The notes beneath the pieces are model-generated. The model was not told the origin of the DNA and ran no database searches. It saw nothing but the letters and a program-made list of their open reading frames with translations. A stretch of DNA of 64,000 nucleotides from Macrostomum lignano (Eukaryota): NCBI GenBank assembly GCA_002269645.1, contig NIVC01000975.1, positions 124,001 to 188,000 on the forward strand, given 5' to 3'. Each line of letters starts with the position of its first letter. The first letter of the stretch is position 1. Shown here in pieces: positions 8,616 to 38,816 of the stretch. The position numbers were made by a program, and so were the translations under genes.

Positions 8616-8645
8616 TTTTTGAAAAAGAAAATTTAAAATAAAATA

Positions 8646-11096: not shown

Positions 11097-11097
11097 T

Positions 11098-16150: not shown

Positions 16151-16521
16151 GCCTTCTGATTGGCTCTCCATTCTTGACTCTCTCTTTAGTCGCGAACTCC
16201 ACCCCTCTCTTTATTATTCTAGGCTCAACCCCCCCCCTTAAGTTAGTTTTATAAATACACTGGTTTAGACCCTGCGCCTACTTACTGCTCCTTCTGTCCT
16301 ACTATTCAACTTAGCTCTAATTATTTAGTCTCATTAATTATTTTCTTTACAGCTTTCTCTTTTGTCTCTTTACTGAACGCTCAATTATTCTCATCCTTAA
16401 AGTAAATAATATTACTTTTACAGTCCCAAAAGTCTCTACCGCTCCGCATTGCAGCTCAAGCAGTCACAGGCCTCGAGCATCGGCATCTCAGCACTGATCG
16501 CAGCCCCACAGTTTCTCAGAG

Positions 16522-17199
16522 ATGCGCCGGGGCTCTGTAGCCTGCCCCTTTTGTCCCAGGCGGTTCTGCCGCACTCGAGCGGCAGTGTCGCAGTACTTGC
16601 GTCATGTGCGGTCACACGGAATGGGCTGCGACTCGGAGCCAGAGGAGGCGGCTGCGACCAACTCAGAAGCTGGCAGAGCGGCGGCGGTCGAGCAGGTCGC
16701 GTCTCGCAATGAGTCAGCGATGCAGCCGTGTGCAGACGGCAGTCGTGCAGTGACGAAGCGTCACGAGTGCGAGTCAGTCGGAAAGACCCGAGCTACAAAG
16801 AGTGCTGCAACAAGGCATTGTCAGGCTCAGGGTGTCCAGAGGCCGATCCAGTGCAACACTTGCCAGAAGAATTTCTCCAGAAAAAGCGAACTCAAAGCTC
16901 ACATTAGTGCAGTGCACTGGAAGAAGAAAAGGCACGAGTGCAAGTGGTGTGGGAAGTCCTTCGCAAAAGCATTTCATCTACACGTGCACATCCGGTCTCA
17001 CACTGGAGAGAGGCCGTTTGAGTGCGATGTGTGCGGCAAGAGATTCAGTGTCAGCAGCAGCTTTACGAGGCACTCCAGAGTGCACACCGGAGAAAAGCCA
17101 TTTGAGTGCGAGATGTGCGGCAAGAGATTTAATCGAAGCAGCCACCTCGCTAGGCACTCAAGAAGGCTGCATGCTGGAGAAAAGGCATTTTTTGTGTAA
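16522..17199 (+). CDS. C2H2 zinc-finger protein, paralog 1 (intact, 225 aa, atypical N-terminal finger plus 4 fingers)
   Basis: N-terminal CPFC...HVRSH, followed by CxxC-x12-H-x3/4-H fingers with TGE(R/K)PF linkers. Confidence 0.85.
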   Translation: MRRGSVACPFCPRRFCRTRAAVSQYLRHVRSHGMGCDSEPEEAAATNSEAGRAAAVEQVASRNESAMQPCADGSRAVTKRHECESVGKTRATKSAATRHCQAQGVQRPIQCNTCQKNFSRKSELKAHISAVHWKKKRHECKWCGKSFAKAFHLHVHIRSHTGERPFECDVCGKRFSVSSSFTRHSRVHTGEKPFECEMCGKRFNRSSHLARHSRRLHAGEKAFFV

Positions 17200-17519
17200 G
17201 GTCTGCGGATTTGTTGTTTTCCACTCATCGTACTACATATTGTCCAAGTAGTCAGCACTCCTAGTATCCTAATTATTGTTGCATGTCTTTTTACACTTTT
17301 TTAACAACAAGCATTTAGCGTTTTTGTTTGCCCAGTCTGAAATACAGATGTAGGCTGTTAAATGCGTGGCTAAAATTTCGTCTCAAACTTTTTCCCTTGT
17401 ATTTATAATTACGCCGATGGCATGCAAACTTCATTTATTGTTTGTTGTAATGCTTGTCTTGATGCGATCATTATTTTGACATTGATTTAGGCCCTGTAAA
17501 TTGTAAAATTCTGCAGTTG

Positions 17520-18203
17520 TGGTGGAATTTGCTCAGCTCTCAGGGCCTCAGCCAGCGGGCTGTGTTTGAGCTGCACCAGTTTTCTGGGGAGTTCATCTTC
17601 AGGTGTACCTTCTGCACTGGCTGCTCGGTCGCTACCTGCTCATGGCGGTATTCGAAGCCGATCAAAGCACCAATACCTGTCCGGTGGTCCCATGTGTCTG
17701 CACTGGGTATATCCGCTCAGAACTTTCGTTTTTAATGGCTTGTTCGCTCGATCTGTCTCCGAGATGGTTGTCCCTCGCTCGCTGAGCTCTGTCTCTGAGG
17801 TGGTCACGATGCATCATCAAATCTCGAACTTGGTGATCTTGGACTCGCCCTACTTGTTGAGTCACAGCTTCTTGTTGGGCTCCTTCTCTTCACTCTTTAT
17901 TGCAGGTATCCTAAGATCAGTGCTGTATCGCAGCTATTTAAGAAGTAGTACTTTAACCAGCCTACTGTCTCTAGCAACGAATGAGGTCCATTTGTCAATA
18001 ACAAGTACCGTAATTCCGGGATGCTTAAACTTTAAAACAGTCTTCCCAGAACTCTGGCCACAGCCGCTTTGTCAATGCCACAGGATCATTCATCACAGAG
18101 AAGTCCTGTGTTTTCGTTTTAAATCACTAGAAGGTTGTTTGCTTCTAATTAGCCCAGATCAGCATGCATTCGGCACCATGGTTCCTTTGCTATTGGCAAT
18201 TGC
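17520..18203 (-). mobile_element. Decayed Ty3/Gypsy integrase fragment, unit 1
   Basis: The minus strand reads KEPWCRMHADLG...IPE...TNGPH...HGTTG, with stops and frameshifts. It is homologous to the blocks after paralogs 2-4. Confidence 0.75.
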
Positions 18204-18206
18204 AGC

Positions 18207-18976
<770 letters not shown>

Positions 18977-19153
18977 CGAATATTTAACTCAGAAGTGGCT
19001 GCAGAAGTGGATCACCGGTCTTGTTATTTACTGTGGGCCAAGTGCTTTAAAGTTGCTCACTATCGTTTAACATCTCTTGTCGTTACGTATTCATGATCCT
19101 TGTTGAATTCTTTTAATGTAGTGCAGATGGCAGCTAATCCATAACCAGTTAGT

Positions 19154-19823
19154 TACAGCACTCAATGACCAGTTAGTGACAGCACTCAATGACCAGTTAG
19201 TGACAGCACTCAATGACCAGTCAGAGACAGCACTCAATGACCAGTTAGTGACAACACTCAATGACCGGTTAGTGACAGCACTCAGTGACCAGTTAGTGAC
19301 AGCACTCAATGACCAGTCAGAGACAGCACTCAATGACCAGTTAGTGACAACACTCAATGACCGGTTAGTGACAGCACTCAGTGACCAGTTAGTGACAGCA
19401 CTCAATGACCAGTTAGTGACAGCACTCAATGACCAGTTAGTGACAGCACTCAATGACCGGTTAGTGACAGCACTCAGTGACCAGTTAGTGACAGCACTCA
19501 ATGACCAGTTAGTGACAGCACTCAATGACCAGTTAGTGACAGCACTCAATGACCGGTTAGTGACAGCACTCAGTGACCAGTTAGTGACAGCACTCAATGA
19601 CCAGTTAGTGACAGCACTCAATGACCGGTTAGTGACAGCACTCAGTGACCAGTTAGTGACAGCACTCAATGACCAGTTAGTGACAGCACTCAATGACCAG
19701 TTAGTGACAGCACTCAATGACCGGTTAGTGACAGCACTCAGTGACCAGTTAGTGACAGCACTCAATGACCAGTTAGTGACAGCACTCAATGACCAGTTAG
19801 TGACAGCACTCAATGACCAGTCA
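19154..19823. repeat. 24-bp minisatellite (gacagcactcaatgaccagttagt), ~28 copies
   Basis: Read directly from the sequence. It explains the TALNDQLV/VTNWSLSA ORFs. Confidence 0.97.
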
Positions 19824-20509
19824 GTCACGGCATCCACTGTTGTGCAATGCACTACAAGATCAGCATTTAACTTCTTGTTGCTGCCAAAGATCAGCAGTTG
19901 TTTCCCCACTCTCTATTATGTCATTACCTACTGTAAAAATACCCAGCACTCATATTCTACTTATTCTGTTCCTTTTAACTTTTGTGAGATGAAGCTTTAT
20001 TCTTGTCTGCCTGATGAAATTTGGTCGTTGCACAACTTTCACAGCCGGTGTTTAAGTTTCCCCAGTCTAAAATGCGTGGGTAAAATTTCACTTCAAAATT
20101 TTTTTCCTATTTATCTACAAATTACACTGGTGTAATTGCAAACTGCACTTATTGTTTGTTTCAATGCTTGTCTTAAAAAGTTGATTGCTTTGAATTGACT
20201 TTAATAGGCGACTTGTAGGGTTTTAAATGCAGCTGTTGTCATGGGCAGTTGCTCAGCTCTCAGGGCCTCAGCCAGCGGGTATTCAGTCAGCTGATCAAGT
20301 TGGTTGAGTGTTTCAGCTGCAGCAGTTTTCTGCTGAGGCTTCGCATTGAGGTGTTTCCCGCACTGAGCTCTCAGACAGTAATAAATTACAAGAAAAAGAT
20401 TTGGTTACATTTTACAATTCAATGTGCTTCTTATATAGGACATTCCTTGATTTAAATCTGGTGTGTCCTGCTTATTTGCACTACTCTACGTGATCTCCCA
20501 TGCTAAAAC

Positions 20510-21630
20510 CACCCTACCCACCCCATTCCTCACCCTACCCACCCTATTCCTCACCCTACCCACCCCATTCCTCACCCTACCCACCCTATTCCTCACCCTA
20601 CCCACCCCATTCCTCACCCTACCCACACTATTCCCCACCCTACCCACCCTATTCCTCACCCTACACACCCTATTCCTCAACCTAGCCACCCTATTCCTCA
20701 CCCTACCCACACTATTCCTCACCCTACACACCCTATTCCTCACCCTACACACACTATTCCTCACCCTACCCACCCTATTCCTCACCCTACACACACTATT
20801 CCTCACCCTACCCACCCTATTCCTCACCCTACACACACTATTCCCCACCCTACCCACCCTATTCCTCACCCTACACACCCTATTCCTCAACCTAGCCACC
20901 CTATTCCTCACCCTACCCACCCTATTCCTCACCCTACACACCCTATTCCTCACCCTACACACACTATTCCTCACCCTACCCACCCTATTCCTCACCCTAC
21001 ACACACTATTCCTCACCCTACCCACCCTATTCCTCACCCTACACACACTATTCCTCACCCTACCCACCCTATTCCTCACCCTACACACACTATTCCTCAC
21101 CCTACCCACCCTATTCCTCACCCTACCCACCCTATTCCTCACCCTACACACACTATTCCTCACCCTACCCACCCTATTCCTCACCCTACCCACCCTATTC
21201 CTCACCCTACCCACCCCATTCCTCACCCTACCCACCCTATTCCTCACCCTACCCACCCTATTCCTCACCCTACCCATCCTATTCCTCACCCTACCCACCA
21301 TATTCCTCGCACTACCCACCCTATTCCTCGCACTGCCCACCCTATTCCTCGCACTACCCACCCTATTCCTCGCACTACCCACCCTATTGCTCGCACTACC
21401 CACCCTATTCCTCACCTTACACACCCTATTCCTCGCACTACCCACCCTCACCCTACCCACCCTATTCCTCGCACTACCCACACTATTTCCCACCCTACCC
21501 ACCCTATTCCTCACCCTACACACCCTATTCCTCAACCTAGCCACCCTATTCCTCGCACTACCCACCCTATTCCTCGCACTGCCCACCCTATTCCTCGCAC
21601 TACCCACCCTATTCCTCGCACTACCCAATC
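20510..21630. repeat. 21-bp minisatellite (accctacccaccctattcctc), G-rich on the minus strand
   Basis: Read directly from the sequence. It explains the TLPTLFL ORF. Confidence 0.97.
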
Positions 21631-22432
21631 CATTCCTCTCCCTCCTTATTACACAATCACATTTTAGAGTATAAGTTTACTTTGTTAGTGTTCCACAAAG
21701 AGCCTTATTTTTTTCTATTTTCCACGAACAAAAAATAGAGTTTTAATTTAATTTTTGTACAAAACATTTCTCAGAGGAATTTTTGCCCCTTGCTCAGCTT
21801 CCAGACGTCAACCAGCGGTTTCTATGGAGTATGTTCGCTAGCTCTTTTATTCCAAATCTTCCGAGACGGAACACTTAAGATGCCCGAAAAATCTCCAGCT
21901 CAAAATCGCACACTTTGAGATTCCAGAATAGCGTTCCAGATTGAAGAAGCACCAGACTGGGTGCCTTTTTCGAAAATGCTATTGTATTTTAATTTTTCAC
22001 CTGAAAAGCATGGGCATTACCTCAATTGTACCAGTTAGATTGGATAGATTTGCTTCTCCAGTTTGTGTCGGCTGCTCCATGTAGACAGCTCTGCTGGCAT
22101 TGATCCAGCAAGCTGCAGTTAAGTTCCACTAAGTCCACGGAGAAGTTTTTCGGTCCGTCAGAAACCCTGAAAATGCCACCTCTCATAGACAAGTGCAGAG
22201 TTCTTTCGAGAAAGATTTTAATGCATGGCACTAAACTTATCGTAACTTGTGCCCAATCGGCGTGTGCTGATTGGTTGTAAACACCCACCCCAAGTCAACC
22301 CCCTCTGCACTGCACCCCTCCGCCGTGAGGTTTAAATCACCTGACTTTTACTCAGACTGCCTCACCTTTCTCGCGCTGCATGAATTTTTTTATCGCACGG
22401 AGTGGCGTGAGAGCTGCCGCGCCTAGGCTGCA

Positions 22433-23506
22433 GTGGCCGAGATTTCAATTGACCAAATCACTGCAAGGCAGCTTAGAGACCGTCTACGCCAACTGGGACT
22501 GCCCAGTGGCGGTCGCAAGCGAGAGTTGCAAGTCAGACTGGAACAAGCCAGTTTCTCAAATCAAGCCAAGCGACGTGGACGGTCAACAGCCACTCACTCG
22601 AGCGAAATCGACCGAGTCAGCACCAGCAGCAGCGACGACGATGAGGAAGCGACTCTGGACGAGGCTGGCACCCAGCAGGGCACTGACGATCTGGACCAGA
22701 GGATCGCCCGTCAGGAGAAGCTGCTTCGGCTGAGGACTCTGCAACGCCAGACTGCTGAGATCGAGGCTGAGCTGGAGAACAAGCCTCTCCAACAGAGCCG
22801 TAAGTTGCTGAGCCCCTTGCCGATTGACTGGTCCCCCGCTGCCTCTGAGCCGGAGCTGGGACTGCCAGACCTGGGCCTTCAAGGCCCCTACAGCACTTCT
22901 GCCAGGCCGTCGGGACCGTCAAAGGCCTTTCTGGTGAAGGACTTTATCAACCGTGATGGCGAGGAGCCCGCCTCTGGCGAGAAGTCCAGAGTCCGGACTG
23001 AGCAGATCTCGGCGGGTCAGTGGGTAGCAGGCAGCAACCGAATCCTGTTGAAACTCCTCGACGAGGGTTCCCTGGTCACCGTTAAGGATGGCGCAGTTGA
23101 TCTTGAACAGCTGAAGGCCTACGTTCGCTACTGCGTCCAGTTCGGCGAGTTTATGCACCAGGGTTTCAGTCAGGCCGCCCTCAACTGTTACGCTGAAGAC
23201 TTCAGGATCCTGCAACATCAGTCGAGCGGCAGCTGGGAGCGGGAGTCGCTGCAGCTGCTATCCAAGCACATTCTGGCACCAAAGTCAAATCAGGGTGGCA
23301 ACGCGATCTCCCAGCGCACCAACTTCAAGCCCAGTAAGCCAAAGCAGCAGCCGTCCGGCTTTGTCGGCCCGATCGATCCTGAGGGGCGGGAACTGTGCGT
23401 GAAGTTCAACCGCAACGGCTGCCTACGGCGCGACTGCAAGTTCAGGCACGTCTGCTCCGCCTGCTACGAGGCGCGCCCGCGCCAGTTCTGCACTTCAAAA
23501 AACTAG
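22433..23506 (+). CDS. gag-like ORF1 with N-terminal SAP motif and C-terminal CCCH/CxxC zinc finger
   Basis: ITARQLRDRLRQLGLPSGGRKRELQVRLEQ (SAP-like) and CVKFNRNGCLRRDCKFRHVCSAC. The ORF starts at GTG in gcaGTGgcc context. Confidence 0.8.
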   Translation: MAEISIDQITARQLRDRLRQLGLPSGGRKRELQVRLEQASFSNQAKRRGRSTATHSSEIDRVSTSSSDDDEEATLDEAGTQQGTDDLDQRIARQEKLLRLRTLQRQTAEIEAELENKPLQQSRKLLSPLPIDWSPAASEPELGLPDLGLQGPYSTSARPSGPSKAFLVKDFINRDGEEPASGEKSRVRTEQISAGQWVAGSNRILLKLLDEGSLVTVKDGAVDLEQLKAYVRYCVQFGEFMHQGFSQAALNCYAEDFRILQHQSSGSWERESLQLLSKHILAPKSNQGGNAISQRTNFKPSKPKQQPSGFVGPIDPEGRELCVKFNRNGCLRRDCKFRHVCSACYEARPRQFCTSKN

Positions 23507-25100
23507 ATCGCGGCCGGCCGGGGGGCTCAACTGGCAGCGCAGCTGCCCCGGCGGAAGCCAAAGTCAAACCCCCGCTGCCCCCCCGGCTGGCCCTGTCCCA
23601 AGACACTCGAGTCCGTTGCTTTCTCATCCGACCTCGCCACAGCCGCCTGGGAAGCTGAGCTGACTGACGATCCTGACCGCGAATTCCTGCTGAATGGCAT
23701 CCGCAACGGCTTCCGACTCACCTGCCCTGACCCGTCAGAAAGAGCCTCAACTATGTCAGAAACCCAGAACTACCTATCAGTCAACGGTTACCGGCAGCTG
23801 GTCGAGCAGCAGGTACGAGAGGAAGTCCTCAATGGCCGCTACGTTCAAGTCAGTGACAAACCGGAGGTCATCAGCGCCCTTGGAGCCATTCCAAAGAGCA
23901 ACAACAAGATTCGACTCATCCACGACTGCTCTAACCCTCCGGGTCTCTCCCTAAACAGCCGATTTTCTTCCGACTACCGTATCAAGTTCGAGACCGTCAG
24001 TCACTTCACCGACAAGCTGCAACCCGGTTGGTTTATGGCCAAAGTCAACCTCGCCAATGCCTACCGGAGTGTCGGCATCAGCCCGAACGATTTCCGGCTC
24101 ACCGGCTTGAAGTGGAAATTCAGCGATCAGAGCAGCGATTCGTACATCTGCGACACGCGGCTCCCCTTTGGCGCTGCTGCCTCAGTGGAAGTCTTTCACC
24201 ACCTGAGCCAGGCCGTCAAGCGCATGATGCAGAGACGGGGCTTCAACGATATCGGCAGCTATCTCGACGACTTCGCCGTAGCAGCCCCCAGCAAGGACGA
24301 CTGCCAGCTCGCTCTCGACACCCTGCTCAATCTGCTTGGCTTCTCCATCAACTGGAGCAAGGTGGTGGCGCCGTGCACCAGACTGGTCTACCTGGGCGTC
24401 CTCATCGACACCGTCAGCGGCCTGCTGGAGCTTCCGAAGGACAAGCTCGACGCCACCAAGTCTCAGCTGCAGTCCGCGCTCTCTCGCAAGCGCATCACCA
24501 AGCGTCAACTTCAATCGCTCTGTGGCCGCATCAACTGGGTCTGCCAGGTGGTCCGCATCGGGAGGTGCTTCCTGAGACCACTCCTGCTCGAGCTCAGCGA
24601 CCTGAAGCAGCAGCGGCACAAACTGCGCGTGCACAATGATCTTCGCGAGATCCTTAGCTGGTGGGACGCCTGCCTGGCCGCCTCCCCCAGCTGCAAAATC
24701 TGGCGTTCCAGCGGGCCCAGCTGGGCCATCGAGTCCGACGCGTCCAAATGGGGCGGCTGCGGCATCATCCGCGGCCCAGGCACCACCAGCTGGCTCATCA
24801 TGGACTGGCACCGCGACTCAATCGAGATCGAGCCGCTGCACATCAACTTCAAGGAAAGTCTCGCGCCAGTGCTTACGGCCCTGCATTTCCAGCAGCAGCT
24901 GCATCCGGGCTTGTGATCTACTCTGACAGCACCGCCGCAGTCGGCGCCATCAACAAGGGCTCCTCACCAAATCGGCTCGTCAACTCGGCTCTGCAACAGC
25001 TGATGCTCCTCGCTGCGCACCGCGACCTCTCCGTCCAGGCCTTCCACGTCCCCGGGACATTCCAGATCTTCGCTGATAGTGGCAGCCGAGCCGATGACAT
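23507..25100 (+). pseudogene. Reverse transcriptase / RNase H (pol), frameshift near 24910
   Basis: WEAELTDDPDREFLLNGIRNGF, KVNLANAY (catalytic D to N), RLPFG, YLDDF, ESDASKWGG and HINFKE, then -1 frame VIYSDST...FHVPGTFQIFADSGSR. Confidence 0.9.
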
Positions 25101-26218
25101 CAGCGAGCTGACAAACTTCCTGCTCCGGCTCTTTGGCTCTATTCACTTCGACCTTCGCAACCTTATCGAGCACACCCTCTCGCCAGCCACCTGCGAATTT
25201 CTCGCCTTACAGATCGCCTGCCTCAAGTCCCGAGCGCGAACTTCAGCAAGCGCTACCGTGAGCTCTGCCACCTGGCCTTCGCTGAGACAACCGCGCGCTC
25301 TTATCGCTGCCAGATTGACTCCTGGAAGCGGTTCTGCAAGCAGATGCGCATCGACAGCACCCGACCGTCTCTACAGCAGGTCGCGCGTTACATCATCGCG
25401 CTGTCCGACCGCCTCTCCTCGCATGCCAGCGTCGGTGCGTACATTAACGCCGCAGAACTGCACTGCAAGCTCAAGACCGGCCGCGGCCTTCCTCGCGGCC
25501 CCCGCATCGACCTGCTCCTCCGCGGTGTTCAGCGCAAACTCGCCAAGCCGCCGGCGCGCAAGGCGCCCATCACTCCGGGTGACCTCCTCAAACTGCGAGG
25601 AACCCTGCGCCTGCAGCAGCCTCTAGATGCAGCCTTCTGGGCGGCAGTCCTGGTCGGATTCTGGGGCCTCCTGCGCCGCGCCAACCTGTGCTGCTCGAAA
25701 TCGTTCCCACCACCTGGCGAGGCGGTCACCTGCGGCGACCTGCAAGTATCACCGGATCTGGCCATCCTTCACATTCGGCGCTCCAAGACGAACCAGTTCC
25801 GCCAGCGAGTGCACCGCGTTGTCCTGCCGCGCCTCCGGCACGCGGCTCAGCACCCGCTGTGCCCGGTGGCAGCGCTGCTTCACCACCTGCGCATCAACCA
25901 GCCGGACCGCGCCGCTGCTGCCCACCTCTTCGCCTACCGAAGCAGCGGCGGCCTGACGCCTCTACGGTCGTAACAAGCACCCGGTTCTGTCGCCTGTTTC
26001 GGCACGTCGTCCACCGCGCCGGCCTGGCAGACCGGTCTCTGTCTCCTCACAGCCTTCGACGCGGCGGCGCCTCGCTGGCGTTCCGCGCCGGTGTGCCGCT
26101 GCCGGTCGTCAAGGCCCTGGGCGACTGGCGAAGCTCGGCGGTCGAAGTGTACCTGGGGCTGGAGAAGGGCTTCGACCTCCAGCTGGCGGCTGTTCGCAAA
26201 CTGTCTCAGTGCCTATAA
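25098..26218 (+). pseudogene. Tyrosine recombinase, frameshift near 25960
   Basis: TARSYRCQIDSWKRFC (N-terminal domain), GLLRRANL (R), RSKTNQ (K), HSLRRGG (HxxR), GDWRS (W) and EVYL (Y). Confidence 0.9.
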
Positions 26219-26798: not shown

Positions 26799-27480
26799 AT
26801 GCGCCAGGGCTCTGTCGCCTGCCCCTTTTGTCCCAGGCGGTTCTGCCGCACCCGAGCGGCAGTGGCGCAGTACTTGCGTCATGTGCGGTCACATGGAATG
26901 GGCTGCGACTCGGAGCCAGAGGAGGCGGCTGCGACCAACTCAGAAGCTGTCAGAGCGGCGGCGGTCCAGCAGGTCGCATCTCGCAATGAGTCAGCGATGC
27001 AGCCGTGTGCAGACGGCAGTCATGCAGTGACGAAGCGTCACGAGTGCGAGTCAGTCGGGAAGACCCGAGCTACAAAGAGTGCTGCAACACGGTACCGTAG
27101 GGCTCAGGGTGTCCAGAGGCCGTTCCAGTGCGACGCTTGCCAGAAAAAGTTCTCGAAAAAAAGCAACCTCATTCATTCTCTGGGGCATCTGATCTGCACG
27201 TGCACATCCGCTCTCACACTGGAGAGAGGCCGTTTGAGTGCAAGGTGTGCGGCAAGAGATTCAGCAGCGTCAGCAGCCACCTCACTACGCACTCCAGGGT
27301 GCACACAGGAGAAAAGCCATTGAAGTGCAAGGTGTGCGGGAAAAGATTCAGTGACGGCAGCAACTCTGCTAGGCACTCCACGTTGCATACATGAGAAAAG
27401 CCGTTTGAGTGCAGGATGTGCGGCAAGAGTTTCAATCCAGGCCGCGGTCTGACAAGACACTCTGAGCAGCGAAAATTTAA
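26799..27480 (+). pseudogene. C2H2-ZF paralog 2, internal deletion and frameshift near 27170, stop at 27392-27394
   Basis: Same N-terminus as the other paralogs. The finger array is split across frames. Confidence 0.85.
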
Positions 27481-27874
27481 AACTCTCTGAGGTCTTGATC
27501 CTTGCTGTGCGTCGAGCATTTTTTAGTAGCTCACTGTCGTTTAGCAGATCTTTTCGTTTCGTATTAATGAAATTTGTTTAAATTCTGCATTTGTTGCTCT
27601 TCTTGCTTCTAACCTCTGCTTGGTGCTATACTTTTCTAGTTTTTGTTTCCCACTCATTCACAGTCTGCAGTTTTGTTTTCCCAGTCCGAAATGCAGCTGG
27701 AAGCTGGCAAATGCGTGGCTAAAATTCAGTATGAAACTTTTTTCCTGCTGGTATTTATAATTTAAACCGATGGCACTCGAGTTTCTTTATTGTTTGCTTT
27801 TATAATTATCTTCACGTGTTGATTATTTTGATATTGATTTATGCCACATAGGCCATGTAAGCTGTAAATGCAGC

Positions 27875-28645
27875 AGTTGTTGTGAAAGGTACTCAGCTTT
27901 CAGGGCCTCAGGCAGTAGGCATTCAGTCAGTTAATAAAGTTTGTTAAGCGTCTCAGCTGCAGCGGTTTCTGGGTGTTCATCTTCAGGTGTACCCTCTGCA
28001 CTCTTACTGGCTGCTCGGTCGCTACTTGCTCATGGCAGTATTCGAAGCCGGGTCAAAGCAATCAATACTTGTCGGGTAGTCCGGTGGTCCATGCGCCTGC
28101 AGTGGGCTTGCGTACAGAATTTTCGTTTTTAATGGCTTGTTTGCTCGTTGTCTCCGAGATGGTTGCCCGTCGCTCACTGAGCTCTGTCTCTGAGGTGGTC
28201 ACGATGATAGATCATCAGATCTCGAAATTGGTGATATTGGACTTTTCAACTTTTTCAGTCCACTCTTTATTTGAGGGATTGGACTGTAGCCTAAGAGCAG
28301 TGCTGTATTGCAGCTATTTAAGAATTTAGTACTTCAACCAACATGCTCTCTCTAGCAATTGTCGGTAACAAGTACTTCCGGAATGCCTAAAGTTTGAAAA
28401 ATTCTGGCCACAGCCGCCGCGTCAATGTCACAGATTAATTCATCACAAATACGTCCTTTGTTAGCGTTTTAGCTTATATCACTAGGAGGTTGTTTGATTC
28501 TAATTGGCCAAAATCAGCATGCAGTGTTTCTTTGCAATTGGCCATTGCTTTAAGCACCGCTTTCTGAGGTCTCATGCGTTGACATTTGGAACTCTCCGCT
28601 ACGCTCTTATTTTTCTCGGCTTCGATATTTGGCCTGCATGCCGCG
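27875..28645 (-). mobile_element. Decayed Ty3/Gypsy integrase fragment, unit 2
   Basis: Minus strand PNIEAEKNKSVAESSKCQRMRPQKAVL...LHADFGQLESNNLLVI (integrase zinc-binding end and start of the rve core). Confidence 0.75.
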
Positions 28646-28987
28646 CCATTTGCCTTTGATTGCTCAAAAGACATTTAGAAATAACACATATTCACTCGGT
28701 TAAGTATCCATAGGAAATTGGCCGTTTGAATTTTAAGGGAAGAATTAATGCATGTTACGAGCTAGTATTTGCATAATCCTCGTTAAAATCAGCATTTGTC
28801 TATCTAAACCAAATGAAACATATGTTTCTATATGAAGCATATCGACTATATATGCTTTCGAAACCAGAAAGTATCATTCAGTTTTTTTAGATGTCTTTCA
28901 AACACAGATTACAATTGACAAAATCTCTGCCGCTTCGTATTGATGCTCAGGTACAGACGGGTTTCGCAGTCCCACAGTTTCTCAGAG

Positions 28988-30490
28988 ATGCCCCGTCGCT
29001 CTGTCGCCTGCCCCTTTTGTCCCAGGAGGTTCTGCCGCACCCGAGCGGCAGTGGCGCAGTACTTGCGTCATGTGCGGTCACACGGAATGAGCTGCGACTC
29101 GGAGCCAGAGGAGGCGGCTGCGACCAACTCAGAAGCTGTCAGAGCGGCGGCGGTCCAGCAGGTCGCATCTCGCAATGAGTCAGCGATGCAGCCGTGTGCA
29201 GACGGCAGTCGTGCAGTGACGAAGCGTCACGAGTGCGAGTCAGTCGGGACGACCCGAGCTACAAAGAGTGCTGCAACACGGCACCGTCGAGCTCAGGGTG
29301 TCCAGAGGCCGTTCCAGTGCGACACTTGCCAGAAGAAGTTCTCCAGCAAGAGCCACCTCAAAGCTCACATGAGTGCAGTGCACAGGAAGGAGAAACCGCA
29401 CAAGTGCAATCGGTGTGGGAAGTCCTTCTCAAGGGCATCTGATCTGCACGTGCACATCCGTTCTCACACGGGTGATAGGCCGTTTGAGTGCAAGGTGTGC
29501 AGAAAGAGATTCAGGGTCAGCTGCAGCCTCACTAAACATTCTAGAGTTCACACCGGAGAAAAACCATTTGAGTGCAAAGTGTGCGGCAAGAGATTCAGCG
29601 TCAGCAACCACCTCACTGCACACTCAAGGCTGCACACAGGAGAAAAGCCATTTGAGTGCAAGGTGTGCGGCAAGAGATTCAATCAAAGCAACAACCTTAT
29701 TACACACTCAAGGGTGCACACAGGAGAAAAGCCATTTGAGTGCCAATTATGCGGCAAAACATTTAGTGACGGCAGCAGCTTTACAAGGCACTCAAGGCTG
29801 CATACCGGAGAAAAGCCGTTTTAGTGCAAGGTGTGCGAAAAAAGATTTAGTGATAGCAGCGGCCTCACTAAACATTCTAGAGTGCACACAGGAGAAAAGC
29901 CATTCGAGTGCAAGGTGTGCCGCAAGTGGTTCAGCGTCAGCAGCCGCCTCACTAGACATTCTAGACTTCACACGGGAGAAAAACCATTTGAGTGCAAAGT
30001 GTGCGGCAAGAGATTCAGTGAAAGCAGCAACCTTACTACACACTCCAGAGTGCACACAGGAGAAAAGCCGTTTGAGTGCAAAGTGTGCGGCAAGAGATTC
30101 AGTGAAAGCAGCAACCTTACTACGCACTCCAGAGTGCACACAGGAGAAAAGCCGTTTGAGTGCAAGGTGTGCGGAAAAAGATTCAATCAAAGCAGCCATC
30201 TCACTGCACACTTCAGGTTGCACACAGGAGAAAAGTCTTGAGTGCGAGATGTGCGGTAAGAGATTTAATCGAGGCAGCAACCTTACAAGACAATTAAGGC
30301 TGCATGCAGGAGAAGAGCCATTTTTGTGTAAGGTGACCATTTCTGCGGCCAGAGATTCAGTGACCGCAGCAACCTCTAAACACTCAAAACTACACACCGG
30401 AGGAAAGCCATTTGGGTTCAATATGTGCGACGTGAGATTCGATTGAGGCGGCATTCTGACAAAGCACTCCAAGCAGCGCATTGTGTAGCG
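28988..30490 (+). pseudogene. C2H2-ZF paralog 3, ~12 fingers, in-frame TAG at 29822-29824 and TGA at 30239-30241
   Basis: ATG at 28988. The finger array continues in frame past the TAG, which replaces the GAG of the FEC motif. Confidence 0.85.
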
Positions 30491-31024
30491 AATATTCGAA
30501 TTTACTGCCGGTCTTGGTCCATACTGTGCGTCAAGCGTTTTAAGTTGGTCACTATCGTTTAGCAGCTCATGTTGCTTCCAAAATTTTCTAGTTGTTGTTT
30601 TCCACTCATTGTAATTACGTACCGTGAAACGTGAAAGTATTTGGTAATCATAGTACGAGTATACTTATTATTGTTCCACGTGTGCCCTTGAAAGCGAGGT
30701 TTAATATTGGGGGGGGATTAACTAATAGCCTGAAGGTGTATTAACATAAATTTAGGTAAATAAACCTTACTTTACTTTACCAATATTAAGCGTTAATATT
30801 GTCTGCATGAAGGAATTTGGTAACTTTGAGTCTGCCTTTATGTTTTCCCAGTCTGAAATGATAGGCTGTTAAATGCGTGGCTAAAATTTCTTCTCAAACA
30901 TTTTTCCTTGTATTTATAAATTACGCCGATGGCATGCGAACTTTATTTTCTGTTTATTTTAATGCTTGTCTTGACGCGTTGATTATTTTGAAATTGATTT
31001 AGGCCATGTAAGTTGTAAAATTCT

Positions 31025-31835
31025 GCTAAGCTGTCAGGTCCTCAGGCAGCGGGCATTCAGTTAGTTACTTAAGTTTGTTAAGTGTTTCAGCTGCAGCAAT
31101 TTTCTGGGGAGTTCATCTTCAGGTGTACCTTCTGAACTCTTACTGGCTTCTAGGTCGCTACCTGCTCATTGCGTTATTCGAAGCCGGATGAAAGCTGAAA
31201 GCAATCAATACCTGTCCCTCTGGTCCGGTGGTCCCATGCGTTTGTACTGTGTGTTTGCGCTTAGAACTTTTGCTCGTAATGGCGTGTTTGCTCTTTGTCT
31301 CCGAAATGATTGTCTCTCGCTCACTGAGCTCTGTCTTTGAGGTGGTCACGATGATGCATCATCAGATCTCGAAATTGGTGATCTTGGACTCGCCTTACCT
31401 GTTCAGTCACAGTTTCTTGTAGGGCTTCTTCTCTCCACTCTTTTCGGGGATTGGACTGTAGCCTAAGAGCTGTGCTGTATCGTATTTATGTAAGAGGTAC
31501 TTAAGAGTACTTCAACAGACCTGGCGTGTCGGACTGACAATAGACTGACAACGAATGAGGTCCATTGTCAGTGACTAGCACTTCTGGGATGCCCAAATTT
31601 TAAAGCATTTAAATCTCAGCACTCTGGCCACAACCGCTGCGTCAATGTCACATATTAATTCATCACAAATAAGTTCTGCGCTAGCGTTTTAAATCACCCG
31701 AGGGTATTTGGATTCTAATTGGCCAAGATCAGCATGCATTGCTCCTTTGCTAATGGCCATTGCTTTAAGCACCGCTATCTGAGAAGGTCTCATGCCTTGA
31801 CAAATGAGGCTCTCCGCTACGCACTTCTGTCTCAG
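31025..31835 (-). mobile_element. Decayed Ty3/Gypsy integrase fragment, unit 3
   Basis: The minus strand at 31554-31600 reads LGIPEVLVTDNGPH, the canonical Gypsy rve second-Asp motif. MHADLG lies upstream. Confidence 0.85.
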
Positions 31836-32121: not shown

Positions 32122-33030
32122 ATGCCCCGTCGCTCTGTCGCCTGCCCCTTTTGTCCCAGGAGGTTCTGCCGCACCCGAGCGGCAGTGGCGCAGTACTTGC
32201 GTCATGTGCGGTCACACGGAATGAGCTGCGACTCGGAGCCAGAGGAGGCGGCTGCGACCAACTCAGAAGCTGGCAGAGCGGCGGCGGCCGAGCAGGTCGC
32301 GTCTCGCAATGAGTCAGCGATGCAGCCGTGTGCAGACGGCAGTCGTGCAGTGACGAAGCGTCACGAGTGCGAGTCAGTCGGGAAGACCCGAGCTACAAAG
32401 AGTGCTGCAACACGGCACTGTCGAGCTCAGGGTGTCCAGAGGCCATTCCAGTGCGACACTTGCCAGAATAAGTTCTTTAGCAAGAGCCACCTCAAAGCTC
32501 ACATTAGTGGAGTGCACAGGAACGAAAAACCGCACAAGTGCAAATGGTGTGGGAAGTCCTTCTTAGATGTAACTCATCTACACGTGCACATCCGGTCTCA
32601 CACTGGAGAGAAGCCGTTTGAGTGTAAGATATGCGGAAAGAGATTCAGCGTCAGCTACAGCCTCACTAAACATTCTAGAGTGCACACAGGAGAAAAGCCG
32701 TTTGAGTGCAAGGTGTGCGGCAAGAGATTCAGTGACAGCAGCAGCCTCATTAAGCACTCAAGGCTGCACACAGGAGAAAAGCCATTTGAGTGCAAGGTGT
32801 GCGGCAAGAGATTCAGTGACAGCAGCAGCCTCATTAAGCATTCAAGGATGCACACAAGAGAAAAGCCGTTTGAGTGCAAAGTGTGCGGCAAGAGGTTCAG
32901 TGACCGCAGCAACCTCTCTAAACACTCAAAACTACACACAGAAGAAAAGCCAGTTGAGTCCAAGGAGTGTATTAAGAGTTTCAACCAAAGCAGCGGTCTG
33001 ACAAGGCACTCCGAGCAGCACAATGTATAG
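32122..33030 (+). CDS. C2H2 zinc-finger protein, paralog 4 (intact, 302 aa, 6 fingers plus 1 degenerate)
   Basis: Open ORF with the shared N-terminal domain and TGEKPF linkers. Confidence 0.88.
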   Translation: MPRRSVACPFCPRRFCRTRAAVAQYLRHVRSHGMSCDSEPEEAAATNSEAGRAAAAEQVASRNESAMQPCADGSRAVTKRHECESVGKTRATKSAATRHCRAQGVQRPFQCDTCQNKFFSKSHLKAHISGVHRNEKPHKCKWCGKSFLDVTHLHVHIRSHTGEKPFECKICGKRFSVSYSLTKHSRVHTGEKPFECKVCGKRFSDSSSLIKHSRLHTGEKPFECKVCGKRFSDSSSLIKHSRMHTREKPFECKVCGKRFSDRSNLSKHSKLHTEEKPVESKECIKSFNQSSGLTRHSEQHNV

Positions 33031-33519
33031 CGAATATTCAACTTCCCTGCTTTTATTCTACAGCCGTCTTGGTCCTTTTTGTGCGCCAAGCGTTTCATCA
33101 AGTTGCTTACTTATGTTTAGCAGACCTTTCGTTTCATAATAATGATCTTTGTTGAATTTTAATTTGTTGCTCTTGTTGCTTCTAACCTCTAGTTGCTGGC
33201 ATACTTTTCTATTTTTTTACTTCCAAAATTAGTCAGCACTCATAATATACTTACTTATTGTTTCATGTCTTTTGCAAACTCATGTGTTTCGTTTAGCGAA
33301 ATGAATCGTTATTTTTGTGTGCATTAAGGATTTTGGTAGCTTCACGACTTTCAGATTCTGTGTTTATATTTCCCTAATCTGGAATGCAGCTGCAAACTTG
33401 TAAGTGCAACTTTTTTCTTTGTATTTTTAAATTACACTGATTGCATTGTGAGCTTCATTTATGTTTTTTTAATGTGTCTTGATGTGTTGATTATTTTGAT
33501 ACTGATTTAGGCCATGCAA

Positions 33520-35760
33520 GGTGTAAAATGCAGCAGTTGCTGTGGCAGATGCCCAGCTCTCAGGGCCTCAGCATTCTGTCAATTGAGCAAGTTGGTTGAA
33601 TATTTCAGCCGCAGCAATTTTCTGGGAAGTTGCACTCGTACTGGCTGCTCAGTCGCTACCTGCTCATGGCTGTATTCGAGGTCGGACAAAGCAATCAATA
33701 CCGGTCCGGTGGTCCCCTTGTCCGTACTGTGTATTTGCGCTCAGAACATTTGCTCTTAATGGCTTGTTTGCATTGTTGTCTCCGAAATAGTTTTCTTGCG
33801 CTCGCTGTGGTGTCTCTGATTTGGTCACGATGCATCATCAGATCTCGACCATGGTGATCTTATACTTGCCGTAGCTGTTCAGTCACAGCTTCTTGTAGGG
33901 CTCCTTCTCTCCACTCTTTATTGGAGGGATCAGACTGTAGCCTAAGAAGCAGTGCGGTATTTCAGAGATTTGAGGTAGTACTTGCTGTCTCTTTAGTAAC
34001 AAATGAGGTTCATTTCACTAACAAGTACTTCCAGGATGCCCAAATTTCAAAACGTTCTTTACGATACTCGGTAGTGGATTACGATACAGGCTACCGAGCT
34101 ACCGACGGCACTCTGTCGGTAGCCAGTGCGTCAGTGTCACAGATTCATTCATCACAAATAAGTCCTGTTTTTGCATCACTAAAAAGTTATTTCCTAATTG
34201 GCCAAGATCAGAATGCATTCGGCACTATGGTTTCTTTGCTATTGGCCATTACTCTAAGCATCGCTTTCTGAGGTCTCATGCGTTGACATTCGGAACTCTC
34301 CGCGACACACTTCTCTATCTCGGCTTCGATATTTGGCAAGGAAATTATAATGACGCGCCATTTGCATTGATTGCTTGTAATCCCGAATGAGGGTCGTGCA
34401 GAAACCACATCACCAGTGCTCACGGCTTCCCCAGCAATGACTATCCGATGATCGAGTAGCAGTAGATTCTTAGTGCAGCGCAGTCTACTCGATATCGATA
34501 CGACTGTAATACCTCTTCACATGATCGCAGTCGACCGAAAACGACTTTTTAATCTTCTCGTCTCCGTGTGACGCTCTAGCTGATCTTCGAGCTCCAGTCT
34601 TAAATCGAAACTGCTTGTAAACTGTTATGATTGTGAAACTTCAGTAGATCGGAAATCGATTTTCAAATCTGATTTACAAGCGTAAATTGATTCAAATCTT
34701 TAATTTTTATCGTAACCACTACAGCACTCCATGAGCTTCTCGCTCAAGTTGGCTATACCGAAACTCCGCAGGTGTGGGTTTCTTTGAGACAAATCGCATC
34801 AGTTGTCAGGATCAGCTCTTCAGTTTGATCATACGGAGTCAGTAAGTATCTCGATATGATGCCCCGCTCAGTAGCTTCACTGCACTCTGGTCTTCTATTT
34901 TCCAAGCCCAGACAACGTCCTTCGGCAATGATACTGGATAGCAGTCTTATGGCCAGTTGAGGAATGAACACTACCACTCTGAGTACACCCCGAAGCATCA
35001 TCGAAGAACTTCAAAAAACTTTTCGGAACTACCACTATAGTGCTAGCAAACACAGGTCGTTGCATAGTTCTCTTTCAATACTCTCTCGCCTTTCGAATTC
35101 TTTTTAATATCTCCGTAACATCTACAATTAAGCGAAAACGTTAATGTTCGGTCCCTCGACATTTTTAGTCATTTTTAGACATTTTAATAGTCATTTTTTT
35201 CACCAACGACGCATTGCGTAGTCCAGCTGCGAACCGAACTCTTAGAGCTTCTTTCAGAAAGTCTTCAAATTAATCGGTGTCGGCGTGGGCTCGCAATCGG
35301 CTCTCAAAATCTACCGCTGGCTGGCTCGATCGTACTAGTCTTGCTTCAGTACGTTAAACTTGTGTTGCTCCGCCACAAAAGTTTTTTTCTGGAAGGTCAA
35401 AAGCTTTTTGATTTAATCCTTCAGTTTCTTGATTGTCTTGTCCTCTAGCTTTGCTGGAGCGACCAGGTTCGGTAATTTTTCATACTCGCCTTCCCCATGG
35501 GGCTTATAAAAGTGTCGGTATTGGTTAAGAATCAGTCGACTTTCTCATCCTTCATGCCAAATATTCCGCAGAGTGATTCAAACCGCTAGATCCACTTTCC
35601 TTTAGTCCGGGCAAGCTCCCGCAATATTTTTCGAGACAGGAACGTTCTCGGTTTGTCCAGAACCAAACAACAGAAGTAGTTGCACGATCGTGCAGCTCAG
35701 CATGCAACTCTAAAACATGACGTACACTCCTTTTGCTCGTGTTTGCTCGGCAGCTCGTAA
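33520..35760 (-). mobile_element. Longest remnant of the decayed Ty3/Gypsy (Mag-like) element: gag, RNase H and integrase pieces
   Basis: gag: APAKLEDKTIKKL...FVAEQHKFNVLKQ...LRVRFAAGLRN (~35200-35520). RNase H: LTPYDQTEELILTTDA and TPAEFRYSQLEREAHGV (~34725-34845). Integrase: RIVI...PNIEAEIEKCVAESSECQRMRP. Confidence 0.8.
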
Positions 35761-35776
35761 CACTCCTTTTTATTTC

Positions 35777-36158
35777 CATAGGCGTAGGAACGTTTCAAAA
35801 AGTGGGAAGTGGGACAAGGTTCAATGGCGGATTTAAGGGGGTGGTGGCGCACAGGGCTCACGCCCCCGTCGAGTTAGATTTTAAGATTTTTATGTGAAAA
35901 ATGCACATTATCATGTACCGATTATTTTCATTTTTGCGCCGCGGGCACTCATTTTAGAGCTGCAGGCGCTTTTTAAGAGCTGCTGGCGCTATTTTTTGTC
36001 GCTCTGCAGCAAAATACATTCATGCAAAATAACAAAAACAAAAAATGAGTAAAAAAAGCAAATAAGTCTACATTTTGCATTTAAATGTGGAGGGGCTAGA
36101 TAGCATTACTGCCCCCCCCCACTTTGCCTCCACTGTCTCCCCCGTTCCTACGCCTATG
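35777..36158. mobile_element. MITE-like element with 15-bp TIRs (CATAGGCGTAGGAAC)
   Basis: cataggcgtaggaac at 35777 and gttcctacgcctatg ending at 36158. No TSD seen. Confidence 0.7.
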
Positions 36159-36843
36159 TCACACCTTCTTCCAAGTGGCCTTCGCCAAAATGCTTTTTCG
36201 CCGAAATGGTTAGCACCCCATATTAAGTTCAACAAAAGCTGCTGGCTAATTTAGACACAAGAACGCTTTTTTTATTATGAAGTAAATTTTAAAAGGCAAA
36301 AAAATTCTGTTCCGAAAGAAACATTTCCCTCACACGAAATCATTTTGTTATTCGTTATTTATTCGTTATATTATATTATCCTGAGCAGTCTTAAAGGGAT
36401 ACGCAAAATTTAAAACGCTAAACGCAGAATTATAGAAACAACGGGACGGGGATGACACTGCATGGGTTTGGTGTAGTGACGCAGGGTGAATCCTCGTAGC
36501 TCAGCTCGATAGTTTTGTCATCGGTGCACCATAGACTTTTAAAAACAACATACAGTCTCCAGTCTCCATAAAAATTGGCCAACCAAATTTCAAGCAAAGA
36601 ATGCATATGTAATTTGCATAACCTTTATAAAATGAATAAAAATTTTTCGCTTATTTGTCAATAAGGCGCAGCCATCGTCTTTATGTTTTAGAGATCAGAA
36701 AGTATTGTTCAGTTCTTTTAGATGTGTTTCAAACCCGTATTACAATTGACGATGTCTCCGACGCTATGCATTGCAGCTCAGGCAGTGACGGTCTTCGAGC
36801 ATCGGCATCTCAGCACGGATCGCAGCCCCACAGTTCCTCAGAG

Positions 36844-37749
36844 ATGCGCCGGGGCTCTGTCGCCTGCCCCTTTTGTCCCAGGCGGTTCTGCCGCACCCGA
36901 GCGGCAGTGGCGCAGTACTTGCGTCATGTGCGGTCACACGGAATGGGCTGCGACTCGGAGCCAGAGGAGGCGGCTGCGACCAACTCAGAAGCTGGCAGAG
37001 CGGCGGCGGTCGAGCAGGTCGCGTCTCGCAATGAGTCAGCGATGATTGCACGGCACCATCGAGCTCAGGGTGTCCAGAGACCGTTCCAGTGCGACACTTG
37101 CCAGAAGAAGTTCTCCCGAAAGAGCGAACTCAACGCTCACATTAGTGCAATGCACAGAAAGGCGAAACCGCACAAGTGCAAGCGGTGAGGGCAGTTTTTC
37201 TCAACGTCATCTCATCTTCACGTGCATATGCGGTCTCACACTGGTGAAAGGCCGTTTGAGTGCAAGGTGTGCGGCAAGAGATTCAGTCAAGGCAGCCATC
37301 TCACTTCGCATTCAAGGCTGCACACAGAAGAAAAGCCATTTGAGTGCAAGGTGTGCTGCAAGAGATTCAGTCAAGGCAGCCATCTCACTAAGCACTCAAG
37401 GATGCACACAGGAGAAAAGCCATTTGAGTGCAAGGTGTGCTGCAAGAGATTCATTCAAGGCAGCCATCTCACTGCACACTCCAGGGTGCACTCAGGAGAA
37501 AAGCCATTTGTGTGCAAGGTGTGCGGCAAGAGATTCAATGACAGCAACAGCTTCAGAAGGCACTCCAGGTTGCACACAGGAGAAAAGCCGTTTGAGTGCA
37601 AGGTGTGCGGCAAGAGATTCAGTCAACGCGACCATCTCAATACGCACTTTAGAGTGCACACCGGAGAAAAGCCATTCGAGTGCCAGGTGTGCTTTAAGAG
37701 ATTCAGTCGCCGTAGCAACCTCACTAGGCACTCCAGGGTGCATAAATAA
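36844..37749 (+). pseudogene. C2H2-ZF paralog 5, 8 fingers, single in-frame TGA at 37186-37188
   Basis: ATG at 36844. TGA replaces a finger Cys codon, and ORF 37222-37749 lies in the same frame. Confidence 0.85.
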
Positions 37750-38442
37750 ATAAAGTGATTTGATCAAGGTGTACGGGAAGAGCAGCAGTCGAAGCAGGCA
37801 TCTGAAATAGCACATTGTGTAGCGAAAATTCAACTTGGCGCTCCATGATTGCAGAAGTGGACCACCGGTCTTGATCTCCACTATGTGCTAAGCGTTTTTG
37901 ACCTCCTCGCAATCGTTTTGTCGTTTTGCGTTAATGATTTTTGTTGAATTCCCCTGAAGCAATGGCTGCGGAAGCAAATCAAATGACCAGTTAGTGGCAG
38001 CACACATTTGTCTCAATCAATTGCAGCACTGCAATTCACTTTGCTTCTTTACTAGTTTTAGTTTCTGCTCTTTCGAAATGTTTATAGTTTTTGTGCCAAA
38101 CTCATCAAATATTGACTCTTACAATACTCAGCACTGAAAACATACTCATAACTCATGGTTGAACTTATAAATCTTTGTTTTGTGTTATCAATCCTGTATA
38201 ATATTTAGCGGAAAAGTGTTATTTAAATGCTGAATTATTTCAGCTTTTAGAATGCATCTACGAGTGATAAGTAAAAATGACCCTTGGCAGTCAAATACAC
38301 AATACAGTTGACTTTGTCAGCCTTGCTTCGCTGTTCTTTTTCCAATTCACAGTTTGTCTTGATAATTTTAAGTTTATGGCCACCACACACCGCACTATGA
38401 TATAACTGTTGTAGAACAATTTTAGATGGATGGATGGATGCA

Positions 38443-38816
<374 letters not shown>

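Follow-up and report, generated by a model that had tools for sequence, protein, structure and literature searches.

The window, meaning the whole stretch of 64,000 nucleotides of Macrostomum lignano DNA that was analysed, holds a tandem array of C2H2 zinc-finger (ZF) genes. When the whole window was searched by tblastn with the protein of copy u4, exactly six ZF copies were recovered, all six on the plus strand, as the original prediction had counted them. The features of the array are as follows, with the evidence given in brackets for individual entries:

16522..17199 (tblastn 16522-17190), plus strand: ZF paralog u1, an intact ORF of 225 aa with the N-terminal family domain and about 4 fingers (ORF list, tblastn, translation)
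17200..17581, plus strand: 3' flank of u1, common to the whole family (flank alignment, blastn)
17582..18203, minus strand: integrase-like probable retroelement relic of u1, directly adjoining u1b (tblastn of the stitched consensus, colinear blastn)
18216..18997 (tblastn 18202-18997), plus strand: ZF pseudogene u1b, 5'-truncated, its start equivalent to position 32328 in u4, with an internal stop in finger 4
19144-19832 and 20510-21643: satellites
19873..20354, plus strand: 3' flank of u1b, equivalent to 33171-33624 of u4
22433..26218, plus strand: DIRS-like tyrosine-recombinase retroelement, breaking up the array and lying outside the repeat unit (Pfam SAP, RVT_1 and Phage_integrase)
26799..27469, plus strand: ZF pseudogene u2, with a frameshift near 27171 from a 62-bp deletion relative to u3 (ORF list, tblastn)
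27972..28664, minus strand: integrase-like relic of u2 (colinear blastn, tblastn of the consensus)
28988..30500, plus strand: ZF pseudogene u3, with at least 11 fingers and an in-frame TAG at 29822-29824
31102..31833, minus strand: integrase-like relic of u3, in which the predicted GIPEVLVTDNGPH was located at 31555-31593 on the minus strand
32122..33030 (tblastn 32122-33027), plus strand: ZF gene u4, intact and intronless, 302 aa with 6-7 fingers
33031..33629, plus strand: 3' flank of u4, including an island at 33408-33624
33630..35161, minus strand: probable retroelement relic of u4, with an integrase-like part at 33630-34318 and an RNase H-like part at 34644-34890
35183..35775, no strand assigned: a separate repeat, originally read as gag, that lacks a gag signature and is also present in other arrays, upstream of ZF genes
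36844..37753 (tblastn 36844-37743), plus strand: ZF pseudogene u5, with TGA at 37186-37188 and an N-terminal deletion of 28 codons

Only u1 and u4 have kept intact ORFs, the other four copies being pseudogenes, which supports the birth-and-death pattern that had been proposed. The array is also interleaved with other transposable elements as described, in the form of the DIRS-like element, for which terminal repeats were searched for and none found, together with the two satellite tracts. The first of these, a 24-bp satellite, separates the u1b flank at 19873-20354 from 18998-19124. This flank had been taken for the distal end of the integrase; it proved instead to match u4 33171-33624, a 3' flank found throughout the family, even in members without any integrase, and located 3' of the mapped integrase coding part. 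Homology of the u1b flank stops where the integrase starts in other units. The island within the u4 flank is conserved in all family members, those of relic-free arrays included. Homology across the ZF family has a sharp common end at the equivalent of u4 33624.

These genes form a Macrostomum-specific family of intronless C2H2 poly-zinc-finger genes. The 302-aa u4 protein matched Pfam zf-C2H2 (E=3e-33) and zf-H2C2_2 (E=1.6e-43), and the fingers are consecutive and joined by TGEKP linkers, with 3 to 11 per copy when counted by regular expression, which is the arrangement of a tandem C2H2 poly-zinc-finger family. Pfam returned zinc-finger models only, both for the 302-aa protein and for its N-terminal 108 aa, and KRAB (PF01352), SCAN and BTB were not found; no relatives of the N-terminal domain were detectable outside Macrostomum. 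The encoded proteins are putative sequence-specific DNA binders. Finger positions -1, 6, 5 and 3 show the greatest entropy. Variability is greatest at the DNA-contacting finger residues, as in any poly-ZF family.

Copies u1 to u4 are followed by the same decayed block on the minus strand, as was originally noted, and sensitive blastn ran from gene through flank to block in single colinear alignments (u1 16430-18203 with u2 26708-28548; u2 27215-28664 with u4 32767-34375; u3 29899-31833 with u4 32442-34319). The junctions between gene, flank and relic are identical across all four units, and the repeat unit of about 2.3-3 kb consists of a conserved leader of about 130 bp, the gene, a 3' flank of about 0.4-0.6 kb and the antisense relic. 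Neighbour-joining trees of the flank and of the relic are congruent, with (u1,u2,u3) set against (u4,h4,h5) at 96-100% bootstrap. Lesions are held in common as well: one relic stop is common to five of six copies, frameshifts are also shared, and the consensus of the six relic copies still requires five frame switches. The common junctions, trees and lesions together argue that the block was already dead at the first duplication and was copied within one tandem unit, with no repeated insertion, and so the proposal that ZF gene and antisense relic were amplified as one unit is upheld.

Comparison of rates separates the gene from what follows it. The relic copies of different units are 18-26% diverged (K2P 0.18-0.26), and in the u4/h4 pair the K2P of the relic, 0.076, equals that of the flank, 0.080, so the relic appears to evolve neutrally. 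Between clades the relic distances lie somewhat below those of the flank, which we put down to the AT-rich flank aligning poorly. The 5' part of the ZF genes shows a K2P of 0.02-0.12 and a dS of 0.025-0.12 compared with 0.18-0.45 for flank and relic, and its tree is not congruent with that of the relic. The expectation that separate ZF and relic trees would agree failed for the 5' part of the gene, a conflict that under the refutation originally set out would count as a sign of independent insertions. As dS there is far under flank divergence, the explanation for the incongruent tree lies in gene conversion and not in independent insertions; on these distances, conversion evidently kept the genes alike over their 5' half as the flank and the relic diverged. 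An assembly duplication artefact was rejected given the 18-26% divergence of the copies, and carriage of the ZF gene inside a mobile element was rejected for want of termini or other evidence.

The nearest public sequences are from Macrostomum lignano itself. The relic is restricted to the array in the window and its syntenic counterpart (L001), and four other loci (L002-L005) carry arrays of the same ZF family without it, with annotated genes of about 290 aa. The absence of the block from paralog 5 was confirmed by blastn, and the syntenic locus retains a relic behind its u5 counterpart. Window positions 37385-37621 match two places in that locus and mark a deletion; the comparison shows that u5 joins what are two units in the syntenic copy, a deletion between ZF repeats having removed the relic.

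The identity of the block is a more delicate matter. Pfam rve was matched at E=7.4e-5 (23.4 bits, threshold 32.6) only by a consensus translation in which the frameshifts had been bridged by hand, and at E=0.1 without bridging; single-copy translations, including natural single-frame fragments, gave no rve match. RT_RNaseH_2 was matched at E=4.1e-5 (24 bits, threshold 29.8) at 34644-34890 on the minus strand, with a clean reversed control, upstream of the integrase-like 33630-34318 on the same strand. When the blocks and 33030-36650 were simply translated in three frames, Pfam found nothing, or RNase H at an E of about 0.07. Gag, protease and RT had no Pfam match in any frame of 33030-36650, no CCHC knuckle or other gag signature occurs in 34380-36600, and self-comparisons contained no LTR-like repeated sequence. 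The u4 relic is homologous to the syntenic copy as far as 35161, and the different repeat that begins at 35183 is present in other ZF arrays too. The claim that unit 4 extends to RNase H and gag is therefore retained for RNase H, at a sub-threshold score, and withdrawn for gag.

One reading of these data is that the block is a plain non-coding spacer of the repeat unit, with its integrase and RNase H likeness due to chance. All retroelement domain matches fall below the Pfam gathering thresholds, a reversed-sequence control yielded a spurious match of equal size (E=6.7e-5, 23 bits), and the databases were silent: PDB searches with the stitched integrase, a 7-sequence profile and the stitched RNase H returned no retroelement, and two large protein searches gave no integrase, the stitched integrase having no match among 5.8 billion proteins. 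However, the family matched by the control is of low complexity and the match fell in another, charged region; hhalign aligned the relic with the second catalytic Asp motif (TD.G.eF) of a genuine rve integrase (P=0.005); and the two pol domains match independently, in the correct order and on the same strand. We regard chance likeness as unlikely on balance. The block is probably, if tenuously, a retroelement pol relic with RNase H followed by integrase, in which Gypsy is indistinguishable from BEL/Pao. The Ty3/Gypsy integrase originally named is thus preserved as an rve-like similarity, sub-threshold and on a stitched consensus, and finds no echo in single copies, PDB or protein databases.

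We propose, and consider it likely, that the locus is a tandem array of the ZF family in which a dead antisense pol fragment is carried passively within the unit. The pol fragment would already have been a pseudogene when the unit first duplicated, and unequal crossing-over would then have carried it along as a passenger. Gene conversion kept the 5' half of the genes near-identical as flank and relic drifted, and a deletion between ZF repeats, as the syntenic copy shows, fused two units into u5 with the loss of one relic; a truncation would have given u1b, and satellite expansion and the DIRS-like insertion would have remodelled the array. The passenger status of the fragment is argued from its neutral decay and its dispensability.

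Another possibility is that the relic is retained because it is useful, with transcripts that run on from the ZF genes supplying piRNA or siRNA silencing with RNA antisense to the retroelement. The piRNA pathway is active in M. lignano and includes unidirectional clusters (PMC4604429), every relic is antisense to the ZF genes, and a conserved AATAAA between stop codon and relic was searched for and not found, all of which would fit such a model. However, the orientation is shared because all relics descend from one event and so carries no independent weight, the divergence of the relic is that of neutral sequence, and the relic is gone from u5 and absent from the other arrays of the family with annotated genes. 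Furthermore, a protein search with the stitched integrase detected no intact relative that could serve as a target, the copies are as diverged from one another as given above, and the DIRS-like element in the array lies in the sense orientation. This model is accordingly very unlikely. As the divergence of the relic equals that of non-coding flank, a copy was lost from u5 and no intact relative is detectable, we see no sign of function in its sequence and infer that it has none of its own. The array does resemble uni-strand piRNA clusters of the flamenco type in having retroelement fragments antisense to a common direction of transcription, but differs from them in that a single fragment family is repeated by descent and the DIRS-like element is in sense.

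Closer parallels exist for the genes. As in mammalian KRAB-ZFP clusters, for example on human chromosome 19, poly-C2H2-ZF genes stand in tandem arrays with many pseudogenes in surroundings rich in transposable elements, and variability peaks at the residues that contact DNA. Unlike KRAB-ZFPs, the Macrostomum family has no KRAB, SCAN or BTB and its N-terminal domain is restricted to the genus; the 5' half of its genes evolves in concert and does not diverge, and binding of its proteins to transposable elements is conjecture. The FiNZ-ZNF genes of cyprinid fish are likewise lineage-specific, KRAB-less and clustered in tandem, with a short conserved N-terminal sequence that has an acidic stretch, but the Macrostomum N-terminal sequence has no detectable relatives outside the genus. 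The idea of a KRAB-independent analogue is not new, as co-evolution of ZNF genes and transposable elements has been proposed across Metazoa, and shown for the KRAB-less FiNZ family, by Wells et al. (2023; PMC10547256), who do not discuss flatworms. Taken furthest, the ZF family would play in flatworms the part of the KRAB-ZFP and FiNZ transposon repressors, through a new N-terminal effector, supplemented at this array by read-through small RNAs; if true, protein-based and RNA-based defence would be coupled at one locus. The analogy with KRAB-ZFPs is speculation, as is the idea of antisense small RNAs, and we hold this combined reading to be highly improbable.

Barely credible is the idea that one Gypsy family inserted independently at each ZF gene through a preference for that site: the conflict between ZF 5' and relic trees that would speak for it is accounted for by gene conversion, LTRs were not found, flank and relic trees agree, and it is refuted by one flank-relic junction in four of four units, with alignments continuous across it, and by the common frameshifts and stop. 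The locus is an ordinary tandem segmental duplication with a transposon-fragment passenger, with no essential difference from others of this class, in which the junctions are likewise fixed, the passenger decays neutrally, unequal crossing-over later remodels the unit and gene conversion affects the gene only. Its significance beyond annotation is little. It does illustrate that a dead transposon fragment may seem to be associated with a gene family merely from sitting inside the duplication unit, and that gene conversion can set gene and flank trees at odds without independent insertions. Published work spanning Metazoa has already framed the question whether KRAB-less ZF proteins serve flatworms against transposons, and the family with its Macrostomum-restricted N-terminal domain may offer an entry to it.

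In this repeat-rich flatworm genome the locus represents ordinary tandem segmental duplication: a zinc-finger (ZF) gene and the decayed retroelement-like sequence behind it were amplified as one unit. The original prediction was largely right in its structural part. With the longest intact copy as query, a tblastn search of the 64-kb window found exactly six C2H2 ZF paralogs. They share one strand (+), as had been claimed:

16522-17190, +, ZF paralog u1
18202-18997, +, ZF paralog u1b
26799-27469, +, ZF paralog u2
28988-30500, +, ZF paralog u3
32122-33027, +, ZF paralog u4
36844-37743, +, ZF paralog u5

Full copies have a non-finger N-terminus of ~110 aa, followed by canonical fingers that vary in number (3-11 per copy by regex match) and are joined by TGEKP linkers. 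Reading frames are intact only in u1 (225 aa) and u4 (302 aa, intronless); four of the six copies are damaged, u1b by the loss of the first ~200 bp of coding sequence and an internal stop, u2 by a 62-bp deletion that shifts the frame, u3 by a GAG to TAG change at 29822-29824, and u5 by a TGA at 37186-37188 and an N-terminal deletion of 28 codons. No KRAB, SCAN, BTB or other effector domain was detected in the ZF protein. Finger entropy was maximal at positions -1, 6, 5 and 3 (2.0-2.6 bits, with most framework positions at <=1.2 bits), as is usual for poly-ZF proteins.

Self-comparison by sensitive blastn returned single colinear alignments that start ~90 bp 5' of the ATG, span gene and 3' flank, and continue into the retroelement-like block:

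u1 16430-18203 with u2 26708-28548
u2 27215-28664 with u4 32767-34375
u3 29899-31833 with u4 32442-34319

Units u1-u4 therefore have identical gene-flank-block junctions, and this confirms that the same block follows four of the paralogs. NJ trees were built separately for the 3' flank and the block, with three copies added from the syntenic public locus NIVC01000647.1 (L001; its copies include h4 and h5), and were congruent: the flank tree groups (u1,u2,u3) at 96% bootstrap, the block tree (u4,h4,h5) at 100%. Even the majority consensus built from six block copies requires five frame switches and carries a stop, …F*NLGIPEV…, common to five of the six, so the block was already a pseudogene at the first unit duplication and was copied along with the gene. 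Independent insertion beside each gene is excluded by the same junctions, the congruent flank and block trees and the shared lesions, and amplification as one unit is borne out.

Relic copies differ between units by a K2P of 0.18-0.26 and flanks by 0.21-0.45; for the u4/h4 pair the values are 0.076 (relic) and 0.080 (flank), so the relic diverges as fast as the neutral sequence around it. The 5' part of the ZF gene shows a K2P of just 0.02-0.12, the u3-u4 value (0.022) being lower than the u4/h4 divergence, and synonymous divergence in the N-terminal coding region is 0.025-0.12. Its tree is poorly resolved and differs in topology from the flank and block trees. This discontinuity in sequence divergence indicates gene conversion of the gene's 5' half, which is why a naive comparison of ZF and Gypsy trees would falsely suggest independent insertions. 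The congruence that had been proposed as a check thus held for flank against block and failed for the gene's 5' part.

The integrase-like part of the block, on the minus strand, was mapped as follows:

17582-18250, -, u1 (tblastn HSP; colinear DNA homology stops at 18203)
27972-28608, -, u2
31102-31829, -, u3
33630-34318, -, u4

Raw frame translations of the blocks gave no Pfam match, and natural single-frame fragments of individual copies matched neither rve nor any other model. A flank-plus-relic consensus of ~1.4 kb (about 0.7 kb integrase-like) was built for domain searches only. Translated with frameshifts bridged by hand, it matched rve along …DIDAAAVARVLGRMF·NLGIPEVLVIDNGPHF… with 23.4 bits (E=7.4e-5), short of the gathering threshold of 32.6; the unbridged frame reached only E=0.1. 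Another part of the window holds a Maverick element with a genuine rve integrase, and hhalign aligned this stretch to the second catalytic Asp motif (…YPEIFMTDPGKEF…) of that enzyme (P=0.005). The stitched peptide had no match among 5.8 billion proteins, and neither it nor a 7-sequence profile of it retrieved anything relevant from the PDB. Reversed, the peptide gave a spurious match of the same size to Pinin_SDK_memA, a low-complexity family (E=6.7e-5), and an rve E-value of this order on this charged sequence is therefore no proof. Two adjacent unit 4 fragments at 34644-34890 (-) jointly match RT_RNaseH_2 (E=4.1e-5, below the gathering threshold; reversed control clean). This RNase H-like part and the integrase-like part share a strand, with the former upstream, the order found in Ty3/Gypsy and BEL/Pao pol genes. 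On these thin statistics the block is probably an LTR-retroelement pol relic, of either the Gypsy or the BEL/Pao superfamily; Gypsy-type polyproteins are the main source of the RT_RNaseH_2 model, a point in favour of the predicted Gypsy integrase.

Unit 4 had been said to extend to RNase H and gag. The sub-threshold RNase H match lends the first some support; as to gag, no gag, protease or RT model matched in any frame of 33030-36650 and the unit 4 region has no CCHC knuckle. Unit 4 and its syntenic counterpart are homologous as far as 35161. At 35183-35775 lies a separate repeat of ~590 bp, different from the unit 4 relic and with no protein-domain match. Several other arrays have copies of it (about 70% identity), placed a few hundred bp 5' of their ZF genes:

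L002 7094-7668 and 19851-20432
L003 3637-4218 and 13733-14307
L005 9083-9616

L002-L005 are four further contigs with arrays of the family, which have the N-terminus and a conserved 130-bp leader in common. Genes in these arrays are annotated as ~290-aa proteins and tblastn found no integrase-like sequence in them, so the relic is private to the present array and dispensable for the family. Across these contigs synonymous divergence in the N-terminal region (e.g. 32122-32451) is merely 0.01-0.09 and non-synonymous divergence up to 0.12, with dN/dS >1; 3' flanks are hardly alignable between arrays. This pattern suggests either homogenisation between arrays or nucleotide-level constraint with diversification of the protein. 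Proteins sharing the N-terminus were Macrostomum lignano models only (72-83% identity); HMMER, run exhaustively on 1.84 billion representatives, yielded seven clusters. Synteny between L001 and the window spans 32.8-44.3 kb of the latter and takes in the downstream Npa1/NopRA1 gene. At 87-95% identity the two differ well beyond the 1.9-2.4% SNP divergence of the M. lignano subgenomes (PMC10733133); relative to L001, the window may be an older paralogous segment or derive from a sibling Macrostomum species.

That paralog u1b keeps the distal integrase end, as had been supposed, is not supported. Its 3' piece (19873-20354, separated from 18998-19124 by a 24-bp satellite) is the equivalent of u4 33171-33624, a stretch situated 3' of the integrase coding part as mapped and also found behind ZF genes in integrase-free arrays. 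Flank homology stops at the equivalent of u4 ~33624 in u1b (20354) and in all integrase-free arrays examined (L004 3300; L005 529 and 11529). Beyond this point copies run on into three different sequences: relic, other spacer or satellite. The shared piece may represent either 3' sequence of the gene itself or an outermost remnant of the element, and the sharp common boundary could mark the end of an mRNA, the end of the element or the limit of the segment that was duplicated ancestrally. The absence of the block from u5 is indeed a loss, and its mechanism is visible against L001, where a u5 counterpart is followed by the relic (L001 4878-6289) and a 5'-truncated ZF. Window 37385-37621 aligns to two L001 sites, which implies a deletion between ZF repeats that fused two units into u5. 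A 266-codon open frame at 17566-18366 (+), antisense through the entire u1 relic into the u1b N-terminal region, is unexpectedly long for decayed sequence; it is closed by stops in other relic copies and probably arose by chance.

As predicted, the array is interleaved with other elements. A DIRS-like tyrosine-recombinase retroelement (22433-26218, +) interrupts it between u1b and u2; its long ORFs encode a SAP-domain protein, RVT_1 and Phage_integrase, its GC content is 57-63% vs about 47% around it, and terminal repeats of at least 40 bp were not found. Window 1-8651 holds Maverick/Polinton-like genes in a head-to-head inverted duplication, either a true palindrome or possibly an artefact of the assembly:

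1324-4089 (+) and 4376-7021 (-), near-identical polB-like ORFs
741-1199 (+) and 7146-7604 (-), identical small ORFs
7608-8651 (-), Maverick/Polinton-like rve integrase (Pfam E=5.8e-10)
117-737 (+), partial copy of the rve integrase

A tandem repeat at 10905-11861 has a translated unit of ~51 aa, with a run of N residues adjoining in the ORF translation. Mini- and microsatellite arrays are numerous (38423-38816, 39492-40551 and several between 49.7 and 63.7 kb) and include TAGA ~98 times and 21-bp units ~50 times within the Npa1/NopRA1 (URB1-like) gene region. The intervals 49.8-50.6, 54.3-56.2, 57.8-59.2 and 62.0-63.7 kb contain long repetitive ORFs of simple composition.

The functional interpretation put forward originally is unsupported. 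It held that read-through from the ZF genes yields antisense retroelement RNA that feeds small-RNA silencing. Only three points favour it: the relics are antisense to the genes, an orientation inherited from a single event; no conserved AATAAA lies ahead of the relic; and piRNA clusters are present in M. lignano (PMC4604429). Against this, the relic decays neutrally, has been lost from u5 and is absent from the other arrays, the stitched-peptide search detected no intact relative as a target, and the DIRS-like element inside the same array is sense-oriented. A KRAB-independent arms race between ZF proteins and transposable elements has already been published for Metazoa and the FiNZ family (PMC10547256), an idea that the window neither tests nor extends. 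The best-supported reading is of a ZF cluster under birth-and-death and concerted evolution, composed of predicted DNA-binding genes and carrying a dead pol fragment as a passenger.
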